A stretch of 13,209 bases of DNA, from positions 1 through 13,209 of the forward strand of contig JADGIF010000239.1 in the NCBI GenBank assembly GCA_018985225.1. The letters are read 5' to 3'. This DNA is from Amoeboradix gromovi X-113 (taxonomy: Eukaryota > Fungi > Sanchytriomycota). The notes under the pieces are model-generated. The model made no database searches and had not been told where the DNA came from. It saw only the letters and a list, made by a program, of their open reading frames with translations. Below, in pieces: positions 1-6,547 of this stretch. Position numbers and translations under genes: made by a program. How positions within the stretch are numbered: position 1 is the stretch's first letter; every line of letters begins with the position of its first letter.

Positions 1-1
1 C

Positions 2-166
2 CAGGAGATAGTACAGCTAATACAAGGGCATATGGAATATCTGTCAGAGAGATTCCCTTCCCAGGGTTCCAGGATTTCCAGGTCGTTTTCAAAGATCTTG
101 ACCACAAATGAATCAGATATGGACTTTTTGAAAAAGTTCTTTTTAAACGAAAGCATCACGCAATAA
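2..166 (+). CDS. 3' end of a CDS running in from the left edge (QEIVQLIQGHMEYLSERF...FLNESITQ*), function unknown
   Basis: The frame is open from base 2 to TAA at 164-166. The stop overlaps AATAAA, as in several other genes here. Confidence 0.5.
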   Translation, partial: QEIVQLIQGHMEYLSERFPSQGSRISRSFSKILTTNESDMDFLKKFFLNESITQ

Positions 167-630
167 ATACTCTGGATCTTATTTAATGCAAGCAGCTTGC
201 GCCCTAATCTACCAGTCATGGATGAGATGCAGTGCACGCGTAAGTAAGAGTTGCACTTCCGTGAAATAAACGCCAGTATGTGTTTCTTGCTTTGGCTTTC
301 ATGATTCTTGAAGCTTTCATAGTGTGGCTATGAATCAAATTCAACTGGCCTTGGACGATATGATATAAAATTGAGTATTAACCCTCTGGAGCACTGATTA
401 TAACTGGTGCCAACGAGCTGGTTTTACGCAATTTTCATCACCTTTTTTGTTCGTCTGCTCTTTTACACAAAGCTTCTTGTTTTTCCAACAATACACCTTT
501 ATTTTACGATAAGACTGATTTCAAATTGAGATAATTGCACCATTTTAGCTCCAATCAAAGAAATTCGTATTCGGCAAATATTCATTTTGTTGCCATTGTT
601 TTCACAACCTGAACCGTACATTTACCAACG

Positions 631-1063: not shown

Positions 1064-1075
1064 AATAAATTTATT
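1064..1075. terminator. Bidirectional polyadenylation signal (palindrome AATAAATTTATT) between convergent genes
   Basis: A perfect 12-bp palindrome gives AATAAA on both strands between the stop codons at 1057-1059 (+) and 1077-1075 (-). Confidence 0.55.
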
Positions 1076-3249
1076 CAGTTTAAAATGACTTGTTTAACAT
1101 TAGCCATCAATGCCAGTTCCTTGATCTCAGTGCTTGCGACTATTTCTATGGCCATGTACTCCAAATTCTTTAAATACCACCCAAGCATTCCAAGCACCTC
1201 TTCTGTCTCAAAGGACCTGTATATCCTGCATCCTGCTACCATCTCTTTTACTCTTGCCTGCTGGTGCTCATCAAACAGCTTGATTGAATCGCTCTTCATC
1301 AAAAACGTGCAGTCCTCGTTTTCTTTGATATAGCGCATCACGGCATCCGAGTTGCACTCTATACTGTGCGAGTGTATCATTACCAGTCTGCTCTTCCTTT
1401 CGAACACCTCCAACTCAAATCCTATGGGCCCTGCAACCATAAGACTGACTTTCTCCACATTTTCAAACCTCTTGTATCTCAGCAGCGCAAGGCTCAGATG
1501 CTTTGGCAGTACCACCACGTTCGATCTGTCTGCAGCGTCAACCGCTCTTGTCCCCAGTAGACCCCTCAATAACTTTGATTCCATCGTATCCGAGTAGACA
1601 TGTATGTTCGCCACTCCGTCTAGCTGATCTAGCACTTTGCTATAAAGAGTCTTGCGAAGCATCTTGTTCCAGTTCTGCTTCCCATCCGACCTTACCGAAC
1701 CCAGCTTATCCCTGTGGTTGAACAGGTTGTTGAACAGCTTGTTGCTGTCGTTTGGTGGCAAAGTGAGAGTTATGAACAGCTGGCTACTATTCTTGAACTC
1801 CGATGGAACATTGGGCACTCTGCAAGGTCTGCAATAGAACCCAAACGTGTACTGGTCAGGAAACACCATGAGAGGGACGAGCTTGCTGTCGACAAGATAC
1901 GCGCTGCAGTAATGCTCCGAATAGCCTGAATCAAGAACCGCAGAATAGAACTTAAGTGATCCGACATTGTCAGTCAGCATCTTCTGAAATAAGTCAGCTT
2001 TGCAAATGTAATCGAAAGATACTGCATTTATTTGTTTTAACAAAAGACTCAGTGACTCCATGTCCGGGCGGTGACTAAACAAAGACACGGTGAATCCTTT
2101 GCAACCAAACACATTGACCTTCAAAGATATGTTGATCAAACCATCGCTGAATCCCACCTGGGACCACAGGTCTTCAGTACTAGGGACTGCATCAAGTGTT
2201 TCCCTACCTGCAACCTCGATTGCGGAGGGGGTTTCTGGTGCACCGGTAGTAGCAGATGGCTGAGGGCGCGTGTTGCTTGTGCTGGCTATTTTGGGTGCGG
2301 CAGCAGTCAAGGCATCTGAAGAACCACCAGGACTAGACTTTGGTATGATGAAATTCAAATAGTCCGGCCTAGACTGGACCTGCTTGGCTCTTTTGCGCTT
2401 CGAAGCAGCATGCTCAAGCGTGCGTTTTCTGCTCGGGACAGAAGATTTCAGTTGATCAATCGAGTCAAAATGAATGCTTTTCAAATAAGCGTTCAACTGC
2501 TCAGTGCCGAGGACATAGTTTTCATATATCTTGCAAGCATCGAGCGCTACGGATTTGAGAAAGTGGCAGTGAAAGTCAAACCGCTCCTCGAAAGTGTCGT
2601 AGTAGTGATTGGTGATCTTGGAAAGGGAGCCGTTGAACAGCTCGGTTAGCTTGTCGTTGAAGTTGATGCCACATTTGGATTCAACAAAATCCGATATGCT
2701 GAGGACTCTGAGAGAGTCTACAGACTCTTGGGTTGCCTGAACAGCCTCAGTCCCGTCGTCTTGGAGTATGTTCCACTTGCACTTGATCGCTAAGAAGGGG
2801 CGCCTGCGCTCTTCGTCTACTTCCAGCTTGATTGATTGGATGCCCTGGAATGCTTTTGAAAACAGCTTGAAGTTGGCCTCCTCTTCGGTTGTGTCCAAGC
2901 TATCAAAGTACTCCTCCACATGTTCGTCGATAGTCGAGTTGGTTTCCGGTTCGATAGACATATCCGCAAATGACTCCCAGCTTACCATGTACAGCTTCAG
3001 CACCCTGTTCTCCCTGATTCCAGCAACGTGCTTGACTATTTTATCCACATAGAATGCCCCGTTCGAGGCGTGCACCAGGATTCTTTCCGTGATCAATGGG
3101 TTCTGGTTCCATGTCTCCAGCATCAGCTTATACAAGTCCGATGTGGATGTCGAGCTACGGACCGCTCTACCATATGCTTCTAGTATGTTCAGTAGCTGCG
3201 CTCTGGTGAATCTTTTGATCACCCTGATCTTCTCATCTTGTGTGGCCAT
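1075..3249 (-). CDS. ~724-aa putative nuclear protein: SAP/HeH-like + chromodomain + NLS + degenerate Hsp70/actin-like (ASKHA) fold
   Basis: Long uninterrupted ORF with first ATG at 3249 (the track start at 3261 is TTG). Chromo-like segment FYVDKIVKH...LYMVSWESFADMSIEPETN...VEEYF. Basic cluster RKR...KRKRAK. C-terminal motifs are colinear with the Hsp70 NBD. Confidence refers to the CDS; the domain calls are less certain. Confidence 0.85.
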   Translation of the reverse strand: MATQDEKIRVIKRFTRAQLLNILEAYGRAVRSSTSTSDLYKLMLETWNQNPLITERILVHASNGAFYVDKIVKHVAGIRENRVLKLYMVSWESFADMSIEPETNSTIDEHVEEYFDSLDTTEEEANFKLFSKAFQGIQSIKLEVDEERRRPFLAIKCKWNILQDDGTEAVQATQESVDSLRVLSISDFVESKCGINFNDKLTELFNGSLSKITNHYYDTFEERFDFHCHFLKSVALDACKIYENYVLGTEQLNAYLKSIHFDSIDQLKSSVPSRKRTLEHAASKRKRAKQVQSRPDYLNFIIPKSSPGGSSDALTAAAPKIASTSNTRPQPSATTGAPETPSAIEVAGRETLDAVPSTEDLWSQVGFSDGLINISLKVNVFGCKGFTVSLFSHRPDMESLSLLLKQINAVSFDYICKADLFQKMLTDNVGSLKFYSAVLDSGYSEHYCSAYLVDSKLVPLMVFPDQYTFGFYCRPCRVPNVPSEFKNSSQLFITLTLPPNDSNKLFNNLFNHRDKLGSVRSDGKQNWNKMLRKTLYSKVLDQLDGVANIHVYSDTMESKLLRGLLGTRAVDAADRSNVVVLPKHLSLALLRYKRFENVEKVSLMVAGPIGFELEVFERKSRLVMIHSHSIECNSDAVMRYIKENEDCTFLMKSDSIKLFDEHQQARVKEMVAGCRIYRSFETEEVLGMLGWYLKNLEYMAIEIVASTEIKELALMANVKQVILN

Positions 3250-3631
3250 GAGCTGTCTCAAAAATGAATCCTTTTATTGTCGAAAGTACATGCATGATAC
3301 GCCCTACCTTGCTTGCGGGATGAACACTACTCACGCTTTATTTTCTACTCAATGCCATGCACTGGTGCATTTTAGGGTGGTGACAAACAGCTATCAAAAG
3401 TTACGGCAGTGTATCGAGGCTTCCTAAACTAAAAATCAGAACACAATCTTAAGGTTGATTTTGATTATTAACTCTCTTAGAAGAATGTAAAGACCAGTTG
3501 ATACTGTTTTCACTAGCATATATAGGTAACGGAAAATATGAAGTAAAACCACTCTGTTGCTTATAGCTCAGGTATACCATAGCAGATTGTAATACAAATC
3601 TGAAAGTGAGAACTGAAAATCAATAAAACAA

Positions 3632-5611: not shown

Positions 5612-6547
5612 GTAGTCAGAATGAATTAAAAGCTAGCGTGCCAATAGTTCGCCTAAAGCATGGACAATAAAACATGAGATATTTCTTCTTTAGTCTGCCT
5701 TTCGAGAAATATGTGTTTAAGAGTTTATCTAGAATTTGCAGATGGGACATCAAATATAAAAACTGGACTAACTTTCTGCAGCAACTTGGAACATTATTTC
5801 AGCTTTATTAGTTTTATGGATTTGAGAGGCGAGTTGACATTAAGCTAGTTGCGGAGTTGACGAGTATAAAAGGAGAATAAATATTCTGTACAGCTATTCT
5901 CTTACTCTTCATCCAATCTTTATTTCAAATAAACCTCTGATTCATGGTACTGATTCATAATAGGGTATATTTTCATTTAAGAACTGTCCAGAAAGAACTG
6001 TCTTGCCCATAAATAGAGACCTTTCCTAACAAAGTTATGGCCAAGAGAATGCAAAAGCTTTCATACACCAGTAAATCAAAGAAATGTAGTGTCTGTGAGA
6101 ATGAAATAGATAAGAGTACCGTCTAAGAAAATGCACCTTTTGCTTAGATGCTCAAAGACCTCATATATTTGAACGAGATGCAGGGTCTTCTAGTTTTATT
6201 TTGAAAAGAGGAATATAATCAATGAAAGAAAATTGGTATAATAGAAGATCATTTATTAATGATAGCATTTCCTCCATATGGTGCACCTTTAAAAACGAGT
6301 TAGTCTAGTTTTTATATTTGGTGTCCCAGATTATTCCCAAATTAAAGAAGTAAACAGCATATAGTTCGATGTCACTGTGCGTCACAACTCTCAATTTTGA
6401 ATTAATAAGACAAAATCAGGGACGCTGAATATTCTAGCATGCTAAACATTTCATAGTTTATTGATTCGGCTGAAGTGGTTTGTTCTGTGCCGAAAAGTTC
6501 TCAAGAGTGTAAAAATTTCTGCGCATGAGTTCCTAAGAGATCTAATT

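Follow-up and report, generated by a model that had tools for sequence, protein, structure and literature searches.

A fast-evolving single-copy gene of a sanchytrid fungus, predicted to encode a nuclear protein that pairs a chromodomain with a SPOC-like barrel

The window, meaning the whole 13,209-nucleotide stretch of Amoeboradix gromovi X-113 DNA that was analysed, holds an ordinary compact-eukaryote set of genes around the one described here. The neighbours encode a Bax inhibitor, an AlkB-like oxygenase and mitochondrial ribosomal protein L16, along with a PP2A-type phosphatase, whose gene has a short intron, and a K+ channel. A repeat of ~230 bp at 5733-5962 (extending to ~6000) has at least 40 copies genome-wide with 89-96% identity; the copy in the window lies ~120 nt upstream of the ATG of the AlkB-like gene (5611, minus strand). 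Window positions 1-211 and 333-484 are 98-99% identical to G000:C111:44694-45050, where both parts abut, and this match reflects either a recent segmental duplication or a repeat that carries an indel.

The gene under study lies on the minus strand as one continuous ORF of 724 codons, opened by the ATG at 3249 and closed by the TGA at 1075-1077. There is one copy in the 10.55-Mb assembly (1319 contigs). The start at 3249 is supported because a homologue, P0002, aligns from its own Met1. An earlier interpretation made from the letters of the DNA (the sequence-only reading) had placed the gene at 1075-3249; this ORF is real, and all the strings that it quoted can be found in the protein within ~4 residues of where it placed them. 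In the N-terminal part these are FTRAQLL... (aa 14-27), FYVDKIV (aa 66-72) and YMVSWESF (aa 87-94). The basic cluster RKRTLEHAASKRKRAK lies at aa 274-289, the earlier numbering being ~4 higher here, and the C-terminal part contains AVLDSGYSEHYC (aa 437-448), NVVVLPKHLSLALLRY (aa 577-592), KVSLMVAGPIGFELEVFE (aa 600-617) and RIYRSF... (aa 675-693). The predicted order along the protein is a SAP-like domain, a chromodomain, a chromo-shadow-like module, helices, a nuclear localisation signal (NLS), a linker, a SPOC domain and an alpha/beta domain. Outlined below are these parts and two features of the DNA around them.

1075..3249, minus strand: whole gene, 724 codons plus TGA stop, without intron, single copy; homologues P0002 and P0003
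3064..3249, minus strand (aa 1-62): SAP/HeH-like domain of four helices (tentative)
2893..3063, minus strand (aa 63-119): divergent chromodomain whose aromatic cage positions are F66, W91 and F94, from hhalign, shuffles, PDB profile and AF2
2653..2889, minus strand (aa 121-199): second beta-beta-beta-alpha module, chromo-shadow-like, from fold prediction only
2395..2652, minus strand (aa 200-285): helical region, conserved up to ~aa 220
2383..2430, minus strand (aa 274-289): bipartite basic cluster RKRTLEHAASKRKRAK, read from sequence; P0002 has a basic cluster at the same place
2152..2394, minus strand (aa 286-366): disordered A/S/P/T-rich linker, from composition and pLDDT 24-37
1708..2151, minus strand (aa 367-514): SPOC-like beta-barrel, from the AF2 model
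1078..1707, minus strand (aa 515-724): conserved domain of alternating alpha and beta elements, for which a PIN-like or an RNase H-like fold is possible
1100..3440, no strand: compositional island of high GC that spans the gene and the ~190 bp preceding its ATG
3316..3392, no strand: exact overlap of 77 nt with the start of contig C933 (G000:C933:1-77)

Relatives of the 724-aa protein are few: just two turned up when 1.84 billion cluster representatives were searched exhaustively with phmmer. The search for homologues that the sequence-only reading had proposed thus yielded one full-length relative, P0002, and a second, P0003, that is matched in its N-terminal part only. P0002 (690 aa, E 3e-60) is found on two ENA metagenome contigs from a gene-dense, AT-rich eukaryote and is 28% identical to the target over the full-length alignment and 29% over the matched stretches. 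Chorismate synthase, in contrast, is 75% identical between the P0002 organism and the window's genome, and on such sequence comparison the two organisms are evidently close kin. From these same two organisms it follows that the target family evolves unusually fast. P0003 (352 aa, E 4.5e-26) comes from Sanchytrium tribonematis (EukProt EP00834) and matches the N-terminal 210 residues. Its gene model (EP00834 P004430) stops at 352 aa, and the final 100 residues show no relationship to the target family; the C-terminal half may be missing, lie in another frame or be cut off by a short intron that was not recognised. Published genomes of sanchytrids are those of Amoeboradix gromovi (10.5 Mb, 36.3% GC) and S. 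tribonematis (11.2 Mb) (PMC8371127). Word-indexed searches of protein sequences, whether started from the target, the family alignment or P0002, returned the queries alone; back-translated family motifs picked up no relative in JGI metagenome contigs; and language-model look-alike searches with the whole protein and with aa 520-724 gave no usable match. Within what was searched, the gene is restricted to sanchytrid-like fungi.

The chromodomain at aa 63-119, which had been proposed from its sequence pattern, stands as a divergent member of its class. When the family was aligned by hhalign with five bona fide chromodomains from the window's genome, the match reached a probability of 93% (E 2.8e-7, 49 columns) and a score of 38.8, a value that none of 100 column shuffles attained (10.1 +/- 2.1, maximum 18.1). 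A profile of aa 55-130 searched against the PDB gave chromodomains as 14 of its 15 best matches (HP1, CBX1/3, Swi6 and cpSRP43), at E 0.06-0.6. Pfam finds no match in the target even at E<=10, Chromo (PF00385) included. In both homologue segments Chromo is the top Pfam family, aligned over model positions 1-50 of 53, with 20.0 bits (E 6.5e-4) and 19.3 bits (E 1.1e-3), below the gathering score of 25.1 bits. The aromatic cage of HP1 consists of Y24, W45 and Y48 (Drosophila numbering), and an HMMER alignment to the HP1 chains 1kna and 6asz equates these positions with F66, W91 and F94. Across the three family proteins the cage residues are F/F/Y, W/W/W and F/Y/F, i.e., all aromatic, while the structural W of the 'NTWEP' motif has been lost. 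The AF2 model, which was built from a three-sequence alignment, places strands at 67-79, 82-92 and 99-102 and a helix at 108-118 (block pLDDT 56-85); for aa 1-210 as a whole, block pLDDT is 56-90, with most blocks at 73-90. Binding of the chromodomain to a methyl-lysine peptide is predicted.

The modules on either side are more tentative. In the putative SAP/HeH-like domain, a SAP-like helix scores 18.3 in hhalign against 8.4 +/- 1.8 for column shuffles, with 0 of 100 as high. Pfam SAP (PF02037) has no match in the whole target or in its N-terminal segment; the genome's two true SAP domains score ~41 bits with this model. A PDB profile search with the N-terminal alignment returned nothing relevant. 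Elsewhere in the genome, contig C11 (G000:C11) carries a SAP-domain ORF of 161 aa (17547-17639, minus strand) and the best HP1-like chromodomain ORF, of 159 aa (17979-18128, plus strand). The two are divergent and ~340 bp apart, separate genes for modules that are fused in the target. The second module, aa 121-199, looks chromo-shadow-like in the predicted fold. As a second chromodomain at the sequence level it was rejected (hhalign probability 0.3%, 15 of 100 shuffles as high). This stretch gives no sequence-level chromo-shadow signal, a PDB profile search with the second-module alignment found nothing relevant, and Pfam Chromo_shadow was not detected in the genome. Further along, the bipartite cluster RKRTLEHAASKRKRAK is present as had been claimed, with a basic cluster at the equivalent position of the homologue, and is a likely nuclear localisation signal. 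The linker that follows (aa 286-366) is indeed rich in A, S, P and T.

In the C-terminal half, the AF2 model gives aa 367-514 a SPOC/Ku-type beta-barrel fold. Foldseek matches this part of the model to the SPOC domains of FPA, SPOCD1, PHF3 and RBM15 with probability 0.98-1.0, and also to the Chp1-Tas3 core; the closest ESM Atlas cluster is likewise a SPOC domain (TM 0.58). Chp1, FPA and PHF3 are tied in Z, and therefore the fold does not single out Chp1. The assignment of aa 367-514 as a SPOC domain can be held with middling confidence, coming as it does from one AF2 model of three input sequences. Pfam SPOC (PF07744) has no match, nor do sequence-level methods give a SPOC signal. The residues that follow, aa 515-724, have pLDDT <50 and match neither the PIN domain nor DomII of Chp1. 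Within them, aa 597-681 weakly match integrase cores, YqgF and MutS, as well as they do ASKHA proteins, so that a generic RNase H-like layer is the most that can be read from them. When the C-terminal 369 residues were searched as a profile, the PDB gave no match at E<=10, and Pfam scans of each domain of the protein gave nothing relevant.

Other genes of the genome encode factors with which a silencing adaptor would work: one Argonaute, one RdRP, a Dicer-like ORF with two RNase III domains, canonical chromodomain proteins and a SET protein most closely related, among solved structures, to SUV39H2, Clr4, DIM-5 and G9a. This SUV39/Clr4/DIM-5-like SET gene lies at G000:C505:7973-8356 and has one short intron; Pfam Pre-SET was not detected in the SET protein or elsewhere in the genome. 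The only RdRP domain of the genome (G000:C398:6342-7919) sits within a 2568-aa open frame, which is unusually long for a cellular RdRP.

Our best explanation, to which we give a probability of about 0.55, is that the protein is a nuclear multidomain chromatin adaptor of the Chp1/TASOR type, joining methylated histones to a silencing partner. This reading is drawn from the combination of a chromodomain and a SPOC domain in one architecture and from the Argonaute, RdRP, Dicer-like and SUV39/Clr4-like machinery of the genome. Its domains come from tool results, some of them predictions; the ligand, the partner and the link to RNAi are inferred. The chromodomain would dock on a histone tail that carries methyl-lysine, with H3K9me deposited by the SUV39/Clr4-like enzyme as the likeliest mark, and the SAP-like domain could supply an additional contact with DNA or chromatin. 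The SPOC barrel, perhaps together with the C-terminal domain, would act as a docking surface for other proteins and bring in a silencing partner. Heterochromatin would thereby be coupled to co-transcriptional or RNAi-based repression of repeats, in parallel with Chp1 in the RITS complex of fission yeast and with TASOR and MPP8 in HUSH.

Known systems offer several points of comparison. Chp1 is built in the order chromodomain, RRM, SPOC, DomII and PIN, and its C-terminal half binds Tas3 (PMC5391189). The target has in common with Chp1 (structure 3TIX, with Tas3) an N-terminal chromodomain and a SPOC domain, here predicted, in the C-terminal half. The differences are considerable: no RRM was found after the target's chromodomain, where the chromo-shadow-like aa 121-199 lie instead; the SAP-like and chromo-shadow-like modules are absent from Chp1; the target is not known to have a Tas3-like or GW-like partner; and the SPOC domain is followed by ~210 residues without a PIN match, compared with ~300 (DomII and PIN) in Chp1. 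A PDB sequence search for Chp1 entries and Pfam detected no sequence homology with Chp1, and membership of the target in the Chp1 family is not claimed. In HUSH, an H3K9me-reading chromodomain (MPP8) works with a SPOC-bearing scaffold (TASOR) in transposon silencing, and the likeness of TASOR to Chp1, whose architecture is described there too, suggests an old design (PMC7532188). Chromodomain and SPOC domain are on separate proteins in HUSH but on one polypeptide in the target, and TASOR has a pseudo-PARP domain and is far larger. HP1, Swi6 and Chp2 have a chromodomain and a chromo-shadow domain. In the target, however, the two modules abut without a hinge, the 'NTWEP' W is missing and the second module has no chromo-shadow signature in its sequence; HP1 proteins, for their part, have no SAP or SPOC domain. 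To our knowledge, RITS has been described only in fission yeasts. Chp1 and Tas3 have been reported absent from Mucor (PMC12863538). As predicted here, the chromodomain-SPOC pairing is as in Chp1, in a lineage where none was known.

Of the alternatives, a possible but clearly less probable one is that the protein is a transcription regulator unrelated to RNAi, in which a chromodomain reads a histone mark and the SPOC domain binds phospho-serine motifs on the Pol II CTD or on a phosphorylated co-repressor, as in PHF3, DIDO, SPEN and FPA. The likeness to Chp1 would then be the product of convergent domain shuffling. Against this, a review of the SPOC family gives PHD-TLD-SPOC and RRM-SPOC architectures and no chromodomain-SPOC family (PMC10111866). 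PHF3, DIDO, SPOCD1, SPEN and FPA all carry PHD-TLD or RRM modules, and their SPOC domains, unlike that of the target, are recognised by Pfam. The same review notes that the SPOC domains of TASOR and SPOCD1 are without the basic phospho-serine patch (PMC10111866).

Base composition raises an unlikely alternative, namely that the gene was recently acquired or derives from a mobile element, its source being, for example, a relative of higher GC, a virus or a transposon that bears a chromodomain. The island over the gene and ~190 bp upstream has a GC content of 41-59% against 25-35% in the flanks. The GC3 of the gene (0.583) lies ~5 sd above that of 53 other ORFs of >=200 aa from ~100 kb of the same genome, three Hsp70 genes included (median 0.35, sd 0.044, next highest 0.426). 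High expression was rejected as the cause, as the three Hsp70 genes have GC3 <=0.41. A fork in the assembly graph at the island's edge and the weak integrase-core matches of aa 597-681 also favour acquisition. On the other hand, GC1 and GC2 of the gene are ordinary, the island has no second copy in the genome, and no terminal inverted repeats or target duplications were found at its edges. There is no reverse transcriptase, integrase or transposase signature. Another sanchytrid and a close relative have homologues, and in the latter the P0002 gene has a GC3 of 0.24, which matches the AT-rich usage of its neighbours. As for the fork, contig C933 diverges into AT-rich sequence after the 77 nt that it shares with the window. 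The overlap, which begins 67 nt before the ATG, probably marks a branch in a de Bruijn assembly graph (k=77), so that the linkage of the gene to its Bax-inhibitor neighbour is provisional. A simple chimeric contig would not by itself account for the island, since the flanks are AT-rich and native-looking on both sides and only one of them has a graph fork. The island may have arisen by recent transfer from a GC-richer relative, by biased gene conversion or through a one-sided assembly problem, and the anomalous codon composition is a separate puzzle about the gene's origin.

We hold it at least as improbable that just the N-terminal 220 residues can be interpreted, the SPOC barrel being a spurious product of the shallow alignment given to AlphaFold and the rest of the C-terminal half having no assigned fold either. 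The modest pLDDT of aa 367-514 (42-73) and the still lower values beyond them fit such an account, as do the silence of sequence-level methods and a single-sequence model, useless in quality, that did not reproduce the barrel.

Last, and very improbable, is the proposal of the sequence-only reading that the C-terminal 275 residues are a degenerate Hsp70/actin (ASKHA) fold and the protein a chromatin-targeted pseudo-ATPase. Two of the checks that it suggested, profile search and AlphaFold with Foldseek, bore out the chromodomain of aa 63-119 and went against the ATPase, with no ASKHA fold in the SPOC-like C-terminal half and no PDB or Pfam match. The claimed colinearity with the Hsp70 nucleotide-binding domain (NBD) does not exceed chance: hhalign against the three Hsp70 NBDs of the window's genome gives a probability of 0.07% and a score of 12.8, which is below the shuffle mean and equalled or exceeded by 23 of 30 shuffles. 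AVLDSGYSEHYC, the supposed 'phosphate-1' motif, falls within the SPOC barrel, and the homologue has N and S in place of its D and G. The C-terminal half does not show a pair of RNase H-like lobes with conserved phosphate-binding loops; ~210 residues follow the barrel, compared with the ~380 covered by NBD model positions in the genome's own Hsp70s. With no profile similarity to Hsp70, actin or Arp proteins, no conserved phosphate-binding motifs and too little length for two lobes, the protein is not a degenerate Hsp70/actin-type ATPase or pseudo-ATPase.

A bolder form of the adaptor reading can also be drawn, and we regard it as speculative. The protein would be a RITS/HUSH-type hub of Sanchytriomycota, in which an HP1-like chromodomain/chromo-shadow pair, a SAP-like DNA anchor and a Chp1/TASOR-type SPOC scaffold link H3K9 methylation to Argonaute-based silencing. 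If this is true, the chromodomain-SPOC silencing scaffold would be ancestral to fungi or opisthokonts rather than an invention of fission yeasts, and its rapid evolution would have kept it hidden from sequence searches. The family illustrates how such factors can hide, with three members among 1.84 billion clusters, no Pfam match and a presence seen by profile and fold alone. If sanchytrids do have a chromodomain-SPOC protein, the Chp1/TASOR design would have been seen independently for a third time. With Argonaute, Dicer, RdRP and a Clr4-like enzyme kept in a genome of 10.5 Mb, the sanchytrids would offer a compact system for studying how heterochromatin readers are wired to RNA silencing.
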